64,000 nucleotides of DNA from Selaginella moellendorffii (Eukaryota; Plantae; Lycopodiophyta). The translations under genes and the position numbers were made by a program. Each line of letters starts with the position of its first letter. The stretch's first letter is position 1. The stretch lies in assembly GCF_000143415.4 (NCBI RefSeq), contig NW_003314264.1, positions 3,709,229 to 3,773,228 on the forward strand, written 5' to 3'. This document shows positions 10,615-22,829 of this stretch, piece by piece. Under the pieces are notes generated by a model. That model saw nothing but the letters and a program-made list of their open reading frames with translations, was not told the DNA's origin and did no database searches.

Positions 10615-10851
10615 ATGTGTCGCCAGCAGAGATCAAGGCTTGCGGTTCTTCTTCTTGTGCTTCTTCTTGTGCTGCTGCCGCCACTCCCGGTGGAATCGTC
10701 CGCGCACCGGAGGCTCCTCCAAAAGGATTTGGAGTTTGATTTGCGACGCTTCCTCCAGTCGCTCATGGTGGAGAGCAAGAGGCATGGCGGGCTGCTCGTA
10801 GCGGAGCTCCATCGCGTGCCAAGCAGCCCGAATCCAATACAGAACGAGTGA
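10615..10851 (+). CDS. CLE peptide precursor, TDIF/H-type (mature HRVPSSPNPIQN)
   Basis: Signal peptide MCRQQRSRLAVLLLVLLLVLLPPLPVES, RRLL motif, C-terminal 12-mer similar to TDIF HEVPSGPNPISN. Possible intron 10848-10961 would give a short C-terminal extension. Confidence 0.8.
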   Translation: MCRQQRSRLAVLLLVLLLVLLPPLPVESSAHRRLLQKDLEFDLRRFLQSLMVESKRHGGLLVAELHRVPSSPNPIQNE

Positions 10852-12389: not shown

Positions 12390-14700
12390 CGAGGTTTTTT
12401 AGGGTTCTTGATTGCTGGCGGGTATGAATGGCAACTGGTGAGTTCCTGGCATTGTTTTTTTCTAATGGCAACTAGTTCCTGGCATGTTTTTTCACTTCCT
12501 AGCATAGTTTATGACCTGGGCTCTGGAAGTGTGAAGCTTCTTTTCTCTTTTTTATTTTCGGCAGGCATCTGATTGTTTTGTCGATGCACGGAACAATGGG
12601 ACAAAATGGTGCCTCCGGATCATCACAGCCTGATCAACCGCGAAAAATAATTCACGTCCACAGCAACACACTGCGGCATACTAGTCTCCTCAAGCTCATA
12701 AATTTGCTGCGCCGCGGCTGACACTGGTGAGTGATTCCGGGGGATTGTTTGAATGATTGAAAATGGCCACGGCCCCACAAACCTGTGCCCAAATCACTCG
12801 CTTGGTTCCTTTGCCTCCCTTGAAAAAAAAATTTCCTTCATGCTTGCAAGACCATCTTATTTTTCTAACTTGTTTTTTTGCTTTGTTTTCGGTTTGTTTT
12901 TCTTTTGTTTTTGCTCCATCTTTGCTTTTAACTTGTTTTTGCTTTGCAGGCACAGTCACACCACTGACGAGTCCCATTCAACGTTTTTCCAAATCTCTCT
13001 CGGAACGGAGATGTTACCTCTGCGAGCAAATGTGATGAAGGCTTTCGTGCTCAGTGCGTACTGGCGAGTGTTGCTGCCATGGCGACGTAGAACTTGGCCT
13101 GTAAGTCCTCTCTCTTTCCTAGTTTCCTGCGTTGCTGCTGACTGGTCTTGGTCTCTCGGTCGTGCTCCAGCAGTAGTTTTCGCTTTGTCTTTTCTAAAAA
13201 ACTCTGGGCTTCGAAAGTGTTGGTAGCTCCTGTTTCGATTTATTGCCATGGCCAGCTAGCTCCAACTCGACAGTAGAATTTTTTCATCTGAGCGTATGAA
13301 AGCTTTGCGTTCCTTGCAGTGGCCGTTAATGGAAAGGTAATTGGTGAAGAGCAGAGCTGCGCGACGTGTGTAAGTTGTTTTAGCCTTCCATGTTTCGAGT
13401 TCTTGCTGTTTTTGTCACAAAATTCAAGCTCGCAGGCAGGCAGTCTGGCTGGATTTAAGAGAATGATGGCGGTATGAGTCAAGTGGCAACACAGGTACCC
13501 TGGCAAAGCTCTCACCGGTGTTGGGACTCTGATATGAAACGAGTGTGTGTTTGTGCTGTGTCAGGTTTGGAATATACATTATGTGTTCCTGGATGGGCCG
13601 AGAGTACATTCTCTCCATGCAAATCCCCAGAGTTCTTGTCAAGACACTGGCTTCGTGTTATTGCTCGCTACGTGACCAAACACACGTATTTTGGGGCGCT
13701 TGTTACCACAGGGAGGTGATTGATGTACAAGGACGGGTATGTTCTTTTCTATCTATTTTCTCGTTTTTTTCTTCTTCTTCTTCTTTTTTTTCCCTTTCGT
13801 TTTGGTTTTTCTTTCTCTTTTCTCTTTTCTCTCCAAGTGCATGTACTAACAGAGGTGTCCATGGAATTTTGCAGGGACGTTCTTTCTCCATGAGTCAGGC
13901 TTTTGTTTAAATGGGAGGAAGGCGACTGATGGGCCTTGGAAAAAGGTAATCTGTCGAGGCACAGCTTAAATACAAGGTACGTATGCGTTGCTGGATATGG
14001 TGCGCCAGAGAGATCTTTTGGCTCACAGGATTCGTTCGTTCGGGCGGATCCTGACCTTTTTTCCAGTCGCAGTGAAAGAAAAAGCAAAACTCTATACGCT
14101 CTCATAGGCCGAAAGTTCTCCTTTCTCGAAACTAACACGTTTTTTTTTCTCCTGATGGTTCTTGCAGGTAGATATACTAGTACCAATGCCAATGTAGAAG
14201 ATTTCATCAGGTACTCGCCACCACTTGAATTGCCGTGCTGAAGCAACGAAAGACTATCCGTTCGTGGTAACATGGTAAGTATCTCCGATGCATCTGAGCA
14301 TTGATTGTCTTCCTTGTTTTCTAACTCTAGAGCTCGTTTTTCTTCTAACAGGTGGTGTTTTCCTGTGCTCGTGGAACCAAGTCCAGATTCAAGCAAATGC
14401 AAATGCGCACCGGCGAGACATAACATTAAACAAGGAGGAGCGTTTCGTTGCGCGTCCTTGGACAGTTTTTAACTCACACGACACACGCAAGCCAGCCACA
14501 GTTGTGTGAATTGATCCCATCGCAGACATTCCTCCTCCGACGTTGCGAACGTGGTGGTAAGTAACTCCAAAGTCTCCCAAGTATTTCTTCTTTTGTTCTT
14601 CTTCCACATTTCATTAATTCCGTGTCATGCGCAGCTGCTAAGGAATCTGAGAGAGGGAGGTATTTATATTGTTTCTTCTCCGGGTCTCGGGAATCAAGCT
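12390..14700 (+). ncRNA. Putative multi-exon long non-coding transcript
   Basis: Telo-box at 12399-12406, then alternating plus-strand donors and polypyrimidine-CAG acceptors; no ORF continues across the exons. Confidence 0.4.
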
Positions 14701-16350
14701 AAAGGTAAAGAACAGTCCGGCTCTTCCAGATCTCCAGACACTCCGCTCAGTCAAATTTATGATTTGGAGAGCGAGCAAAGATGGTTTTCTCGATTGCGGA
14801 ACCAGCTAGCCAGCCAGCTAAACGAGACGAGACGAGACGAGGATATCAGGCAAGTTTTACCAGCGATGATACGAGAAGATGATCATTGAGCTGAGGAACG
14901 CCAGGCACAATACTATTTGGCTTGGCTTCCAAGGATTGGTTTCACATGAATTTATTCCCAGGCGCCATTAAATGCTCTTGAATGCATGTGCCAACAATGA
15001 ATGAGGCAAGAGGGTGAGGTCTATCAAATCGGACATAAATGTTTGATGGTTCGTTCGTTCGCTCGCTTACGAATGGATAGAAAGTAAAAAAAAAAAATCA
15101 AGGGAAAAACTGATTTTGTATTTAAAAACGGATCATTTTCGCGATGTTTCCGAGACCATGATCATCAAGTGGTGCTTCAAACATAGGAACGTGATGAAAG
15201 TGATCTCTGCTGCTGCGAAGGTCGAAAATGTCTGAGGAAGAACATGTCAAACGTCTATAATTTTGCTTGCTCCAGCCATTCATGGCTCATGAGCATTGTA
15301 GTCTACATATAGTTGTTTAGAGCGGAAGCGATGGTTCCATGCACGACGACGAGCCACATTTCAACGCGATGGAGGCATGTTTCGTAGTCAAAGTTTCGCT
15401 CCGCGTTGAATGGACTCTTTCAAACTTAAAGATTATGGAAAGGGATTGGATTGGCACTATGCTTCTTGGTGGGCAAGACCTCACTAAACAACATATAATT
15501 CAGTGACTGAATGTTATTGTGGATTCAAAGATTCGAGCATCTGGAGAACACGTTTAATAGCGTTTCTCAAGTTCCCAGTGCGAGAACTTCAGTTCCAGAT
15601 CTCTTCTTCCACTAGCAGGAAGTGTAAGATAAAGATTCCTCGGGAATTTTAAACCAGCCATTAGCAGCACCTATCTGGAATCTCACTTACGCTGACACTC
15701 GTCAATCTCTTCTTGGAAAGGAAGATCAAACGCGGAGAATACATTTGTATTTTACTGAAGAAATAAGAATATGAAACGCTCGGATTGAATCTTAAGAACA
15801 AACAGGCATCTTCGCAGCCTTTAATGCGCGGGTGTTGAAATAGCATGACACAAAGGAAGAAAAAAAAAAGAAGGAAAAAAGAACAGAAAAAAAAGAAAAA
15901 GAGAACCAAGGGGAAGAACACAACTACGTAACAGTGTTCACATCATTTGATATCTTTGTAAGTGTGTAGTATAAGACATGTGCTTGTGTGTGAAAGTCCT
16001 TTTTTTTCCCGAGGTGGGTTCTTGAGAGCGAGAGTTTGGAGTTTCATTTCGAGTATGATCGGCGTGCGAGGAGCTGGGATCCTCCAAAAAAGCAATTTTT
16101 AACGTGAATGATTGGATCCTGCTCGTCAAGAGGCGAGCAGAATGATTCCCGGCTTGCACCAAGGGTCATGAAAATCATCCGGGACGAAGAGGATCGAGAG
16201 ATCAGAGTGAGCGAGAGGAAGAGAGAGAGAGGGAGAGATCAAGGATAAGCTTCGTTTTTCTGGTTCCACTAACTGCTGCTGGGAATCTCAGGGGTCACAC
16301 ACTATGAAAGGATTCTCTTTTCAAGTATAAAGGGAACCGATTCGTCCATA

Positions 16351-16419
<69 letters not shown>
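16351..16419. repeat. Compound (CT)n(CA)n microsatellite
   Basis: Directly visible, just downstream of TATAAAG at 16326-16332. Confidence 0.95.
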
Positions 16420-16422
<3 letters not shown>

Positions 16423-16745
16423 CCCATCTTGATCTTGCATGTAAGAATTGGCGATCTTTCTAGCTTCCATAAGCCGCGATTCTGTGCAAGCGCTCGAGAG
16501 GGACTCTGTGAAGATCGAAGCTGGGAAGACAATGCCTGTCTAGAGGAGGAAGAAGGATAAAGAAAGAAGAAAGAGCAGAGGAGCTTAGCGATATATAAAG
16601 TTTCTTTCCAGCGCGCATTCTTTCCGGGCCGATTGATTGATTGATCCTCGAATTTTGCTGACACCGCCGATCGAGAGAGGGCTTTTTGTCCGAGATTTCA
16701 TGTCAATCCGTGTCCCATCGGCAAGCCGTGGACACGGGGAGGAGC

Positions 16746-17222
16746 ATGACAGGCTTCTTCATCTGCTTCATCAGGTGGTGCATGGCTATGGCGGTCGTCT
16801 TTGCTCTCGCGGCAGATCTTTGCGATCTCAAGGCCAGCGCGAGGAAGACAATGCACGATCGCCACCACCAGCGCCACCATTCATCCACAGAAACGACGAC
16901 CCTTCACGTCCCTGGTGGTGATCAAGCCCCCTCTTCCTCCTCCTCTATCTTCTCTCGTTCACAACACCACCACCACCACCACCACCATCGCCACCATCAA
17001 CAATCTCCGCGAGTGGACCAACAAGACAAGCTTGGCACTAGCGATGATTCAAGAGCGTTTGGCTACGCCGCTCACAGCCCTCCATCGCAAGGGACGCTGC
17101 TGAGCGATCCATTGCCTTCTCCTCGAGCTCCACCATTCTATCCGGGATCATCCACCTCGGACGCTTCCTTCTACACCTCCGAGCACCTCGTTCCCAGCGG
17201 CCCGGATCCTCTCCACAACTAA
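16746..17222 (+). CDS. CLE peptide precursor (mature HLVPSGPDPLHN) with His-rich variable region
   Basis: Hydrophobic N-terminus MTGFFICFIRWCMAMAVVFALAA; ends SEHLVPSGPDPLHN*, similar to CLE9/10 RLVPSGPNPLHN; TATATAAAG at 16592-16600. Confidence 0.88.
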   Translation: MTGFFICFIRWCMAMAVVFALAADLCDLKASARKTMHDRHHQRHHSSTETTTLHVPGGDQAPSSSSSIFSRSQHHHHHHHHRHHQQSPRVDQQDKLGTSDDSRAFGYAAHSPPSQGTLLSDPLPSPRAPPFYPGSSTSDASFYTSEHLVPSGPDPLHN

Positions 17223-18416
17223 AAATCCTCCAGGAAATCTTGAAGCTCTTCTGCTGCTCGATCGATACAGAAGCTAGGTACGAGCGAGCGAGGATCACAA
17301 ACAACTTCGTTCCAGCCAGGGCCAAAAGATACGTATATATGATCTTAGAACTTCGAGGGAGTTTTTTCTTTTTTTGTGTCCTTCTTCCAAGGCTCTTCTA
17401 ACAACGAGCAAGCACACCACCGAGCAGTGACCAGCACCAGCACCACTACTCACACAGAGATCGAAAAGCCCTCCTCGGCCTTTTTGTGGCTTTTTGGATT
17501 TTGATTGACTGGACTGATTGATTGGTTTGATTCAATCATCATCATCGCCAACAACAAAGGAAGAGCTTTAGTTCTTCATCAAAGTATTGGGGCTTTTCAC
17601 AGAAAAATTCTCGAGTCCAGCAACAGGTTGATTGATCGTAGAAGTTTGTATCTGCCCAATACTTCGATGAAGAGGATAAAAATCTCTGCCTCATGGCTTA
17701 CAAGCACAAGTTCTGCTGTGTGGTTCCTCCAGCCAGGTCTTTCTTGGAGGAACCAAAAAAAATTTTGTTCTTGGGGAACTTCGATCATAACTTATGAATC
17801 AAACGAAACCATTCCAAGGTGTAAGTGCTGTGTGTCTCCACGACTTGTGTTTCTCCCTCCCTGTATCAATCAATGCTCTCACGGAGTCAAGGCAGACCAA
17901 AAACGAGAGAAGAAGTTCTCGCATAATTGTCAGCTCGATCGTGCATCCACCACGAAGAACTGTTGACTTTCGCAAGACAAGAACAGGAAAAGAAAAGAGC
18001 TCTTTGTTTTTTTTTCTATGTGTGTGTGTGTATGTGTGTGTCCTTCATTGGAACAAGCTTCTTCTCACTGTTGTAGATATCCCTCCATCCTCGCAAAGTC
18101 AACTTACATTTGGTGGCGCTGTCGCGAGAAAAAATGGCTTGCTGATGATGGAAGAACCAAAGAAAAATGTATAGAAGAGAGTAGGCCTAGCTATAGCCCT
18201 TGTGCTTTCTTTTGATATCTTTATTTCTTTTCTCTTCTCTACTCTTTCCAAAACCCTAATCAGGGCGCCAGTCTCCCCAGATGAGATCACTGCGGCATCA
18301 CGGCGGCACCTCCGATTCCAGGCAGCCGAGCCACGGCGATCGATCCATGGAGTGGAACCCCGCATTCTTCCATAGCGCGCGCCGGGGTCGAGCAGAAATC
18401 CGGGAAATCCAAGAAG

Positions 18417-20078
18417 GTGAGGGTTAATCTAGCGCCTCTCCTCGCCGCGATCAAGGCATGCAGCGAGGCAAGGGATGTGGAGAAAGGGAGAAGGATTCAC
18501 AGGGAGATTGGGGAGGAGATCAGGGATAATGTCTACGTGACGAGCAGCTTGGTCAGCATGTACTCGCGGTGTGGAAGCTTGGTAGAGGCGCGCAGAGTTT
18601 TCGATGGGATGGGTTATAGCCGCAATGTGGTGGCCTGGACAGCACTGGTCATGGGGCATGTAGAAAGCGGCCATGCCAGAGTGGCTCTCGAGCTTTTCGA
18701 TCGTATGCAACTGGAAGGCTGCTCGCCAAACGCACGGACCTTCGTCGCCGCGATCAAGGCTTGCGCAAGGCTGGCAGAAGAAGAAGAAGTTGGCGATGGA
18801 AAGGCGAGATCTTTACGCAAAGGAGCTGCCATTCACTCGCTTTTATCAGCGTGTGGCCTCGACTCGGATGTTTTCCTCGCAAGTTGCCTGGTGGAGATGT
18901 ACGCGAAGTGTGGGAGGATGACGAGCGCAAGACTGGTTTTCGACGCCGCGCCATGCCGCGACGTTGTTCTCTGGACTTGTCTCATGCTGGGTTACGCTGA
19001 CAATGCGGAGGAGGATCTAGCTCTGGATTGCCTTGGACGGATGGAAGCACAGGGCTGTCCACCAAATGCGTGGACGTTTGCTGTGGCATTGAAGGCCTGC
19101 ATTGGGCTGGCGGGGAGAGAGCAAGGCACGCAAGTTGATGGGAAGATCTTTAAGGTGGGGTCTCTCCGGAAAGGAATGGACGTTCACTCCCGGGCCGCTG
19201 CCAGTGGATGTGACGAGGAAAAGTTCGTGGCAAGCAGCTTGGTGGCCATGTACGCAAAGTGTGGCAGCATGGTCGACGCCGGAAAGGTGTTTGACAGGAT
19301 GAGGCAGCGTGACGTTGTCTCTTGGAACTCTCTCATAGGTGGATACGCGGAGAACGGGCAGGGGAAGCTGGCTTTGGAAGCTCTCGAGAGAATGGAGCTC
19401 GAGTGCTGCTCGCCGGACACCGGAACGTACGTCGCTGCGTTGAAGGCCAGCGGGAGTGTTGTTGCCGTGGAAGCTGGGAGGCGGATCCACGCTCAAGTTT
19501 GTAGGAGAGGTCTTGAGCGAGACCGAGCACTGGCGACTTCTCTGGTGGATTTTTACGGGAAGTGTGGGAGCATGCTCGAGGCTCACCAGGCGTTCGATTC
19601 ACTCGCACCCAGGGATGCTGTAGCACTCACTGCTTTGCTCGCTGGATACAGTCGGGAAGGGGATGTGAGGAGCGTGCTGGAACTTTTCAGCGGGATGGCC
19701 GCCGAAGGTCTCCGAGCCGATGGGATCACTCTCGTCTGCGTCCTGGCTCTGTGCAGCCATGCCGGCCTTGCGGATAAGGGGAAGGAGTTTTTCGAGGCCA
19801 TGAGCTCCAAGTATGGCGTCACTCCGATGCTCGAGCACTATCACTGTATGGTGGACATTCTCGGCCGCTCCAGTCAACTGGATGCCGCGATTTCCTTGGT
19901 GAAGTCGACGCCAGCGGACTCGAGCTCGTTGGCTTGGCTGACGGTCTTAGGAGCATGCACGAAGTGGAGAGACGAGTCCGGGGGAAGGGTCGCGTTTGGC
20001 TCGTTGAAGAACTTGGGTGAAATGGACGCGGCAGCTTGCGTGTTGATGGAAAGCATTTACAAGGCCTCGAGAAGATGA
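18417..20078 (+). CDS. PLS-class PPR protein with short E-like C-terminus and no DYW; start codon uncertain
   Basis: Repeated MYxKCG / DVVSWNSLIGGYA motifs, HYHCMVDILGRS, WLTVLGAC; no in-frame ATG before 18558. Confidence 0.85.
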   Translation: MRVNLAPLLAAIKACSEARDVEKGRRIHREIGEEIRDNVYVTSSLVSMYSRCGSLVEARRVFDGMGYSRNVVAWTALVMGHVESGHARVALELFDRMQLEGCSPNARTFVAAIKACARLAEEEEVGDGKARSLRKGAAIHSLLSACGLDSDVFLASCLVEMYAKCGRMTSARLVFDAAPCRDVVLWTCLMLGYADNAEEDLALDCLGRMEAQGCPPNAWTFAVALKACIGLAGREQGTQVDGKIFKVGSLRKGMDVHSRAAASGCDEEKFVASSLVAMYAKCGSMVDAGKVFDRMRQRDVVSWNSLIGGYAENGQGKLALEALERMELECCSPDTGTYVAALKASGSVVAVEAGRRIHAQVCRRGLERDRALATSLVDFYGKCGSMLEAHQAFDSLAPRDAVALTALLAGYSREGDVRSVLELFSGMAAEGLRADGITLVCVLALCSHAGLADKGKEFFEAMSSKYGVTPMLEHYHCMVDILGRSSQLDAAISLVKSTPADSSSLAWLTVLGACTKWRDESGGRVAFGSLKNLGEMDAAACVLMESIYKASRR

Positions 20079-20088
20079 AACGAGCGTA

Positions 20089-22829
20089 TCAAAGCGGAGT
20101 TTCGTTCTTCATTTTCGCTACCAGCTCGTCGATTTTCATGAACTGCCGCGACCAGCTCGAGTCGTACAAAAACTGGCGCTGATCGAAACGATTGTCGTCG
20201 GGAGAGTAGCTCTGCGATCCATCCAGCGATGTTAGAACTCAAGAAAGATCAAAGCAAGATTACCTCCGCGTGGTAACTTGGCGTTAGAGTCGTCATCTTG
20301 TGCCTGTTGATGGAATAGTAGCGGAAAAAATCCTTCACCTTGTTCGCAACTTGCTTATGGTGGAGTCCATTCCACTCTTGGCACAATCTCTGTACAAAGC
20401 GAGTGATATGAGCAAGAAAGAAAAGTTAAAAACTCTACCTGGAACATTGCGACGGGCCCAAGCCTGTCGACTTTTCGCAGACGAGAAAAACTGTTAAGTT
20501 CATCGTAAGTCATCCCCATGTCCTCTTCGTCCGTCTAGCGATTCGAGACACAGCGTTAGAGAGAAAAGCTTATGAAAGTTTCTAGGCCAAGTACCTGTTT
20601 GTATCCATCGCTGCTCGGCTCCAGCTCCGCCGTTGGTGGAGCAGCTTCCACTTGAGCAAGAACAGGGAAGCCAAGTTTTTGTGCTCCCCAGCGAAGGAAT
20701 GCTCGCAAGTCTCTTTTGCTAATACCACCTATGGGATTTATATCCGCGGAGCTGCAGTCATACTAAACGAGAAATACCATAAGAGGAGAAAAGAAAGCAT
20801 TGCAGCTCTACCTTGGTCATGTATCCTCGGATGCTTTCATCGGCATTAGAACTGCCGAGCACGAGAAGGAATCCTTTCTTTCTTCCGACCCATGGAAGCA
20901 ACGAGGCTAGCATGTATGATATCACCATCCGGACTCTGGCTTGCAGATTTTGTAGTGCTAGATTCTCGACTGGAGTACCAGAGTCCACCTGAAGGCACGG
21001 AAGACAAGTGGTGTTGGCGACAGAAGAAAAGAACACGAAAAGAAAGGTTTTGAGACCTTGTACCGCGGAATTCTTCCCGTCAAGCCACAAAAGAGAGAGA
21101 TGAGCGCGTTCACGACCATATCGATCTTCAAGTTCCAGTGGTTGGAGCCGATCTCTCTAGCTAGCTGCTGTGCCCTGCTTTGCGTTTCTGTAGAGCTACA
21201 AAAGGAATAGAATCGTCAAAGCTACATGTCGCAAAACGGCTTACCTGTTTTGTGAAGCCATGTACACTGTGTAGAAGATCCTGCTAGCGAACTCTTGAGA
21301 ATCGGCTGGTTCTTCATCGGGTTTATAGTTTCCTATCCTCCTCGCATCAGTCAAGACTCGTTTATCGTTTTCGTGAATAGCTGCAAAGACAAACGTTGCT
21401 TAGAATGTGGATGAGAATGGAGATTAACCTTTGATAACAAGCTGACACATGGAGCCAACTATTGCAGCCACTGCCGAGCTATCAGCACCACCAGAGAGTG
21501 GGAGCAAGTAACCTGAAGCTCCACTGCGACGCAAGTAATCCCAAAGCCAGCACGCTGGCCCCAGCGCTATTTCCTGTTCTGGTAGAAATCGAGTTGCCTG
21601 TTTTCTAAAACTCACGAGACTGGAACATATCATTGATGGTCAAACCTTACCTTCAATGGCCGACTAATTCGCAAAGATCGACTAGAGCTTAACTCGCAGA
21701 GAGATGCAGCTACGTTGACACAAGCCATAGAACGCCGCTCACTCGCCTGCTCGCGGAAGCTGCTTTTAGAGGCCCTGAAGTTGACGACCTGCAAGCAAGA
21801 AGCGATCATGCAAAGAAGCAAAAAAGAATAACACTCACCTCGTCTAGATCAAGGCACACTGTGCACACATCAACATCACGCAGCGAGAACTGGCGTCCTT
21901 GGAGGATCACTTCTCCGTTCATCACAACGCTGGCACATCCATCTGCAAAAAATAAATCCAGTGACGATGCTTGCGAGCGTCCACTTACCATAGTAAAGCC
22001 GCCCGCCATCGCAGCCTTGCTGGTTTGCGTACAAGTAGACACCACCACATCTCTCGGTTACGTTTTTCATGAGCCGGAGCCTTGTACGCTGCTTTCGAAG
22101 CTGGTGGTGGCTGCCACTTCCATTGGAAATAATTTGCACGCCATGGAGTGCCAGGCCGCTGCTGGCTTGCTTGGGAGTGAAGAGCTCCTCGCAGCATTCG
22201 GACGCAAGATCCCTGGAGAGAGAGAGAAGCAAGCTTAGAATCCACTGCAAAAAAATTTTTTTTTTCACGTACGTGTCCTGGAACGAGAGGTATGCGTCTC
22301 CAAATGGTGCTGTTCTTTGCGACTTAATGGCTTGCACACACTCGGGGAGATTCAAAGATGTCACCACCTTGTGCCGCTTCCACGACGAGAACCATCGCAG
22401 CTCACGATAGTTTCCATCGTTGGCCATGAACTTCTTTGGACGAACGAGAAGAATCTCCCCATTGAGGCAAAACACCCGGCAATTGTAAAGCACCCCTTCG
22501 TGTAGCACGGGAAGGCCGATATCACACACGATCCCATCCGTGAGGCCGGAGGAAAGGATCTCCGCCAGGCACTCCCACCTGCGCAAAGCGAGAATCGATC
22601 GATCCCCAGCCCTAGAAATCGATCGAAGCACTTACGCGGTAATGCAGGTCTCTCGCTCCAGGAAGTGATCCTCGCAACCATATCCAGTGAGCTCCAGCTC
22701 GGGGCCGACGCGGAAGGCGGCGCCGCTCTCCCTAGCGATGGCGATGGACTGCTTGGTGTTGCTCAGGTTGTGATCGAAGCTCATCGCCCATTGATTCAAG
22801 CTAGACACTGCAAGATTGACGAGCCTCAT
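20089..22829 (-). CDS. QNS1: Glutamine-dependent NAD+ synthetase, multi-exon
   Basis: [16 protein letters not shown]...[79 protein letters not shown]. Confidence 0.93.

Follow-up and report, generated by a model that had tools for sequence, protein, structure and literature searches.

The DNA stretch analysed here, a window of 64 kb from Selaginella moellendorffii, carries a small gene whose predicted product ends in the CLE-type 12-mer HLVPSGPDPLHN, with a first-position histidine as in TDIF and a histidine at position 11 as in CLV3. This combination raises the question of which receptor class such a peptide would address: CLV1/BAM-type, TDR/PXY-type, or both. An earlier note on this DNA had called the peptide a natural 'hybrid' that could be a bifunctional or evolutionarily intermediate ligand. 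We weighed these readings against the gene, its relatives and published structure–activity data.

Gene identity and precursor anatomy

The program-made open reading frame spans 16686-17222 (+), and its first in-frame ATG, at 16746, opens a single-exon coding sequence of 158 codons plus TAA (16746..17222, +). The last twelve sense codons (17184..17219, +; CAC CTC GTT CCC AGC GGC CCG GAT CCT CTC CAC AAC), of which CAC at 17184-17186 encodes His1, translate to HLVPSGPDPLHN, the presumed mature peptide (residues 147-158 of the precursor). Asn12 is directly followed by the stop codon TAA (17220..17222, +), so that a C-terminal extension is absent and no trimming would be needed; CLE receptors bind the free C-terminal carboxylate of residue 12 (PMC4856767). 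The codons at 17184-17222, and the same 12-mer on the other haplotype, confirm the earlier note's statement that the precursor ends in HLVPSGPDPLHN and a stop, and its residue calls H1, V3, N12, D8, L10 and H11 are all correct in the translation. A six-frame translation of the 64 kb window contains the pattern P.GP[DN]P a single time, which argues that HLVPSGPDPLHN is not a chance match. All residues expected of a CLE motif (P4, G6, P7, D/N8, P9, H11 and H/N12) are present at the C-terminus.

The precursor has the general build of a CLE protein, being small (158 aa, below about 250) with a hydrophobic N-terminus. Kyte-Doolittle means over nine residues reach 1.3-2.7 over approximately residues 1-20, and A-L-A precedes residue 23 (positions -3 to -1); from this hydropathy profile and cleavage-site pattern only, a signal peptide of about 22 residues (MTGFFICFIRWCMAMAVVFALA|A; 16746..16811, +) is predicted. 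The middle of the precursor is a His/Ser/Pro-rich, low-complexity variable region that includes the His run HHHHHHHHRHH (16965..16997, +).

A word search with the whole precursor returned one protein, of 152 aa, with 92% identity, 100% coverage and E = 5e-89, recorded as BAH56543.1, XP_024531981.1 and UniRef100_C0STP0 'CLAVATA3/endosperm surrounding region 12'. In a look-up of 90% clusters, BAH56543.1 and the 158-aa protein of the window fell together, the latter as second member. For the 152-aa form, the coding locus is on GL377582.1 of GCA_000143415.2, and between the two loci the DNA identity is 96.7% in the upstream flank, 97.8% within the CDS and 98.7% in the downstream flank. These results show that the ORF at 16746-17222 is the second-haplotype allele of S. 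moellendorffii SmCLE12. UniRef and DDBJ annotate the SmCLE12 allele as a CLE under the name given above, and NCBI models the same ORF, with the automatic name 'forkhead box protein A2-B-like' for XP_024531981.1. A Pfam scan of the precursor found no CLE domain and only a sub-threshold match to ZIP (transporter); the His run probably explains both this match and the NCBI name.

The two alleles differ by 10 substitutions and one 18-nt in-frame indel, and 9 of the 10 substitutions as well as the indel lie within the first 104 codons. The window allele thus encodes 158 aa against 152 aa in BAH56543.1, with 9 substitutions in the variable region, mostly non-synonymous. The indel is at 16915-16932, upstream of the His tract, which itself differs by substitutions (HHHHHHHHRHH in the window, HQHHHHHHRHH in the other allele). 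The last 55 codons contain one synonymous change, and the 12-mer and signal peptide are identical. This clustering of differences in the variable region is the usual pattern of CLE precursors, although with so few differences constraint is not proven (Fisher p = 0.10).

The gene is reportedly the one that Miwa et al. 2009 named SmCLE12. It is therefore already known, its name dating from 2009, and public records already give the sequence of its peptide. Among SmCLE12-15, it was given as "H-CLE" in Hirakawa and Bowman 2015 (PMC4659896). The 12-mer HLVPSGPDPLHN and five related 12-mers were absent from the main texts of the literature searched, in which SmCLE12 is mentioned by name in two papers only.

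A word search with the last 40 residues recovered only the allele, a single candidate being scored; the same search misses the known S. moellendorffii peptide RLVPSGPDPLHH, so the blank says nothing on absence. A profile search with these residues against 1.84 billion representatives returned the allele and five multi-motif K/R-LVPSGPDP proteins. Neither a close SmCLE12 orthologue nor an H1 relative was found among these representatives; since single-motif CLEs fall below the E-value cut of the profile search, the result only excludes a close orthologue in the library. The five multi-motif proteins (P0003-P0007) are secreted and contain 3-8 tandem CLE-like units of K/R-(L/R)VP(S/R)GPDP(I/V)E type or SVPSSPDPLHN type, several of them without H11 and N12. 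These proteins could be plant precursors with several CLE units, or else multi-domain mimics of CLEs.

Peptide composition and expected receptor class

We compared HLVPSGPDPLHN with other CLE peptides by counting position-by-position matches. Identity was 10/12 with Sm408679 from the same genome (RLVPSGPDPLHH; 10/11 without residue 1), with Sm416983 (HLVPAGPNPLHN) and with the synthetic KIN-H1st (HKVPSGPDPIHN), and again 10/12 with AtCLE9/10 (RLVPSGPNPLHN) and a Picea abies peptide (RLVPTGPDPLHN), the last two counted from motifs in Table S9 of Zhang et al. 2020. CLV3 (RTVPSGPDPLHH), PpCLE1 (RMVPSGPNPLHN) and a Huperzia R-type peptide (RLVPTGPDPLHH) matched at 9/12, and TDIF (HEVPSGPNPISN) at 8/12 (7/11 without residue 1). 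When residue 1 was ignored, R-type peptides matched at 9-10 of 11 positions, compared to 7 of 11 for TDIF.

The individual residues follow the same division. The R-type peptides RLVPSGPDPLHH, RLVPSGPNPLHN, RLVPTGPDPLHN and RTVPSGPDPLHH have H11, L10 and D/N8 as in HLVPSGPDPLHN, and differ by Arg1 in place of His1; with H11, H/N12, L/I10 and D/N8 all present, the DPLHN tail matches those of AtCLE18, AtCLE27 and Picea RLVPTGPDPLHN. TDIF/CLE41/44 (HEVPSGPNPISN) and SmCLE14/SkCLE1 (HSVPSGPNPVGN) have H1, V3-P4-S5-G6-P7, P9 and N12 in common with HLVPSGPDPLHN, whereas the TDIF group has N8, I/V10 and S/G11 where HLVPSGPDPLHN has D8, L10 and H11. Thus, two H-type features are found in HLVPSGPDPLHN, namely His1 and an Asn12 with free carboxylate (N12 then TAA), while it has neither the non-His residue 11 (S, G, Q or R) of that type nor N8 with I, V, T, D or G at position 10. 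V3 is present in both classes, including CLV3, and N12 is common in the R-type, occurring in CLE9/10, 14, 16-22, 25-27 and all PpCLEs (Zhang et al. 2020 Table S9 among the sources), as well as in Picea RLVPTGPDPLHN. Since V3 and N12 are common among R-type peptides, His1 is the only TDIF-diagnostic residue of HLVPSGPDPLHN. First residues other than Arg are known in the R-type, as MpCLE2 (KEVPNGPNPLHN) has Lys1 and is classed as R-type, its function depending on the CLV1-type receptor MpCLV (PMC8462819). The sister motif HLVPAGPNPLHN, which also begins with His, was placed in Group 3C, R-type, and not in TDIF Group 4 (Zhang et al. 2020). From these motif comparisons, the body LVPSGPDPLHN is classed as R-type and CLV3/CLE9-like, so that signalling through CLV1/BAM-clade receptors would be expected.

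Published peptide swaps bear directly on this expectation. Hirakawa et al. 2017 (PMC5303819) made all 14 CLV3/CLE25 swaps at positions 2, 5, 10 and 12, and all of them shortened roots, a CLV3-type activity. Alone among them, the K2+I10+N12 swap 'KIN' (RKVPSGPDPIHN) in addition gave a thicker stele and TDR-dependent inhibition of xylem, and it bound both CLV1 and TDR (PMC5303819). The swap set necessarily includes RTVPSGPDPLHN and RKVPSGPDPLHN, which had CLV3-type activity only (PMC5303819) and differ from HLVPSGPDPLHN at residues 1-2 only. In the same study, KIN-H1st (HKVPSGPDPIHN) acted like KIN and CLE41-R1st like CLE41 (PMC5303819), indicating that specificity does not depend on residue 1. 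CLV3-type activity required H11 and was blocked by S11 (PMC5303819), which suggests that HLVPSGPDPLHN, having H11, is competent for CLV1/BAM-type signalling. L2 and L10 are states without TDIF-like activity, and for this reason CLV3/CLE9-like action is rated most likely. Taken together, we consider it probable that HLVPSGPDPLHN is a CLV3/CLE9-like ligand of CLV1/BAM type derived by an Arg-to-His change, and this is the most likely of the readings considered. The structure–activity rules come from Arabidopsis receptors and are applied to Selaginella by analogy. S. moellendorffii has 3 CLV1/BAM and 2 PXY/TDR homologues (PMC8462819 Table 3), so either receptor route is physically available to HLVPSGPDPLHN.

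The earlier note's description of the peptide as a 'hybrid' holds in part: the mix of residues is real and rare, but V3 and N12 are common in R-type peptides, the body is R-type, and residue 1 does not set specificity. How rare the mix is was estimated from catalogued motifs and from metagenome DNA. H11 occurs in 0/18 H1 motifs of Arabidopsis (4), rice (2) and spruce (12) (count from Zhang et al. 2020 Table S9). The same table holds 4 H1 entries of S. moellendorffii, of which 3 have H11, namely HLVPAGPNPLHN twice (Sm416983/Sm420331), these two being probably alleles, and HYVRSAPNPMHN (Sm409888); SmCLE12 is absent from this catalogue. These peptides of the same genome have H1, H11 and N12 as in HLVPSGPDPLHN, but differ from it in N8 and A5 and in their multi-motif precursors (IDA/CLE in the case of Sm416983/Sm420331), SmCLE12 being a single-motif precursor. 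Among 241 million metagenome records, none matched a degenerate DNA pattern for H-LVPxGP[DN]PLHN; with the first codon dropped, the pattern hit 107 plant-DNA loci in metagenome contigs. Of the 116 motifs counted from the examined loci, 104 begin with R and 12 with K, and none begins with H; the instances are not independent, as many come from the same host plants. Within the sets searched, H1 on an R-type body seems to be a Selaginella peculiarity at several loci.

The rival reading that survives best is that HLVPSGPDPLHN is a natural bifunctional ligand, a counterpart of KIN and CLE41-H11th, and activates both CLV1/BAM-type and TDR/PXY-type receptors of Selaginella; we regard it as unlikely. 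The synthetic H1+H11 peptides KIN-H1st and CLE41-H11th (HEVPSGPNPIHN), 10/12 and 9/12 identical to HLVPSGPDPLHN, are bifunctional in Arabidopsis (PMC5303819), and peptides of this kind bind CLV1 and TDR. KIN, KIN-H1st and CLE41-H11th all have H11 and N12 as in HLVPSGPDPLHN, and two of the three have H1. D8 is tolerated by TDR in KIN (PMC5303819). In the structure reported in PMC4856767, His1 stacks on a conserved GxY motif, Ile10 packs on Ile329 and Trp353, Ser11 bonds Lys397, and the free carboxylate of Asn12 is the main anchor in TDR; CLE41-H11H12 loses CLE41 activity (PMC5303819). The N12+H11 pair of HLVPSGPDPLHN fits TDR binding as seen in synthetic CLE41-H11th and KIN, and counts against the CLV1/BAM-type reading. 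H-type peptides take I, V, T, D or G at position 10, and L10 may not exclude TDR. The presence of H1+H11 at several S. moellendorffii loci and in no seed-plant H1 motif would also fit a lineage without selection against dual activity.

Against this, the swap series gave dual activity only with K2+I10+N12 on a CLV3-type body, the other synthetic dual type having I10+H11+N12 on a TDIF body; of these residues, HLVPSGPDPLHN shares only N12 and H11, and it has L2 and L10. The synthetic dual peptides all carry I10, and KIN also K2, the residues on which the gain of TDIF-like activity depended, whereas HLVPSGPDPLHN shares its L10 with the CLV3-type-only swaps, and the L10 analogues RTVPSGPDPLHN and RKVPSGPDPLHN had no TDIF-like activity. 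KIN, KIN-H1st and CLE41-H11th are man-made, while HLVPSGPDPLHN is natural and known from sequence. Hirakawa et al. 2017 (PMC5303819) knew of no bifunctional CLE in nature and proposed that selection acts against dual activity. The published swaps therefore make a dual-receptor role of HLVPSGPDPLHN rather unlikely. The wider proposal, that HLVPSGPDPLHN and the other Selaginella H1+H11 peptides are naturally bifunctional and activate lycophyte receptors of both the CLV1/BAM and the TDR/PXY clade, we hold to be slightly less probable again.

Origin of the motif and the neighbouring CLE gene

We found a second CLE gene in the window at 10615..10851 (+), co-oriented with SmCLE12 and 5.9 kb upstream. 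It encodes a TDIF-like (H-type) precursor of 78 aa that has a strong predicted signal peptide and HRVPSSPNPIQN-E as its C-terminus, and the two haplotypes do not differ in it. In its motif HRVPSSPNPIQN, Ser replaces the near-invariant Gly6, and the motif is close to Picea HSVPSNPNPIQN. The exact 78-aa protein is absent from a 15-billion-protein collection, and no gene is called there at the GL377582.1 locus (L001).

A true H-type gene so near on the same strand would fit tandem duplication, and SmCLE12 could then be a genuine H-type, TDR/PXY-specific ligand whose C-terminus has drifted. H1 and N12 are both present, and the listing as an H-CLE in 2015 agrees with this reading and stands against the CLV1/BAM-type one. 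But the two precursors have nothing in common beyond the 12-mer, and D8, L10 and H11 are all unlike TDIF. H11 gives CLV3-type activity, and it is S11/G11 that keeps TDIF off CLV1. At least 4 replacements separate HLVPSGPDPLHN from any TDIF-like motif, compared to 1-2 from an R-type motif. We therefore consider a TDR/PXY-specific ligand improbable.

Derivation from an R-type peptide is short at the DNA level as well. Starting from an RLVPSGPDPLH(N/H) peptide, one CGC-to-CAC transition, a classic CpG change, is enough to give HLVPSGPDPLHN. Marchantia has both the H-type MpCLE1 (HKNPAGPNPIGN) and the R-type MpCLE2 (KEVPNGPNPLHN), and both types are present in hornworts too (PMC8462819), indicating that the H/R split is older than the separation of bryophytes from vascular plants. 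The proposal of an evolutionarily intermediate ligand is rejected as unlikely, since both classes exist already in Marchantia and a single transition suffices from the R-type.

Transcription of the locus and meaning for CLE signalling

Fifteen sequencing runs guessed to be RNA, from 7 studies, contain the stretch, and 4 of them (4 studies) were aligned over 14200-20100. These runs are argued to be RNA because the intergenic DNA at 14791-15972 has zero depth in all four, a GT..AG joint is present elsewhere in the stretch (14555/14634), and the four assemblies total only 26-56 Mb. In all 4 runs, contigs span 16431/16446 to 17705-17775, colinear with the genome and with zero joints. The results indicate that the SmCLE12 locus is probably transcribed, as an unspliced RNA of at least 1.3 kb (16431..17775) seen in contigs that carry no strand information. 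Variants of the other allele (16826 T>G and 16873 G>A) appear in two runs. Further contig pieces cover 16014-16344, beyond a compound (CT)n(CA)n microsatellite at 16345-16430 that lies within the transcribed 5' region and at which all four assemblies break. A genomic A8 run ends at 17762, and two contigs stop at exactly this position, which is suggestive of a poly(A) site on the + strand.

Read-through from the downstream PPR gene was rejected in view of a gap at 17776-18226, a 3- to 8-fold difference in depth and the lack of a joint. The PPR gene model starts at approximately 17693 (L001 10930 onward), within the region that contigs of SmCLE12 span, and strong PPR coverage begins only at approximately 18227-18334, after the gap; the annotated first exon of the PPR gene may be wrong. 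A GC..AG joint at 18462/18897 was seen in three runs and may be an assembly artefact of PPR repeats.

Upstream of the start codon, an out-of-frame ATG at 16700 opens a uORF of 73 codons (16700-16921, +) that overlaps the SmCLE12 start. This uATG has a weak context (T at -3), and the main ATG has A at -3. The uATG might serve translational control of SmCLE12 by leaky scanning. TATA-like boxes are located at 16326 and 16592.

The last rival is that the locus is non-functional or untranslated, its RNA being antisense or non-coding, or its translation being blocked by the uATG, with the motif as a decaying relic. The strandless contigs and the uATG that precedes the start allow for this, and both count against the ligand reading; the failure to find an orthologue in the protein libraries searched and the small number of allelic differences, too few for constraint by the Fisher test above, point the same way. 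On the other side, the ORF is intact in both haplotypes and is modelled by NCBI, and the signal peptide and last 55 residues are identical between the alleles (one synonymous change) while the variable region has taken 9 substitutions and an in-frame indel. The weak context of the uATG also argues against a relic, as do the two contigs that stop at the 17762 A-run in the manner expected of polyadenylation on the + strand, and we give this reading little credence.

The identity of the gene, its build, the conservation of its motif between alleles and its probable transcription were obtained directly, and we infer processing, modification and receptor choice as follows for the preferred reading, a CLV1/BAM-type ligand. 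SmCLE12 would be made as a secreted prepropeptide in which the signal peptide is followed by a His/Ser-rich variable region that evolves fast, then by a conserved C-terminal third and, at the very end, the 12-residue CLE motif. After removal of the signal peptide, a single cut at Glu146/His147 would release HLVPSGPDPLHN, whose C-terminus would already be free with the stop after Asn12, and Pro4 and Pro7 would probably be hydroxylated. The peptide would signal mainly via the CLV1/BAM-clade receptors, three in S. moellendorffii, and His1 would be a specificity-neutral replacement of Arg1 through the one CGC-to-CAC transition.

For the classification of CLE peptides, this means that the "H-type" label of SmCLE12 derives from His1 alone, and that its other diagnostic residues, together with the 2017 swaps, point to a CLV3/CLE9-like peptide. 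As H1+H11 is seemingly confined to Selaginella among the motif sets checked, a cheap peptide assay could test whether natural CLE bifunctionality exists. If dual activity were true, the strict separation of R-type and H-type peptides, which S/G11 enforces in euphyllophytes, would have been relaxed or never completed in this lineage.
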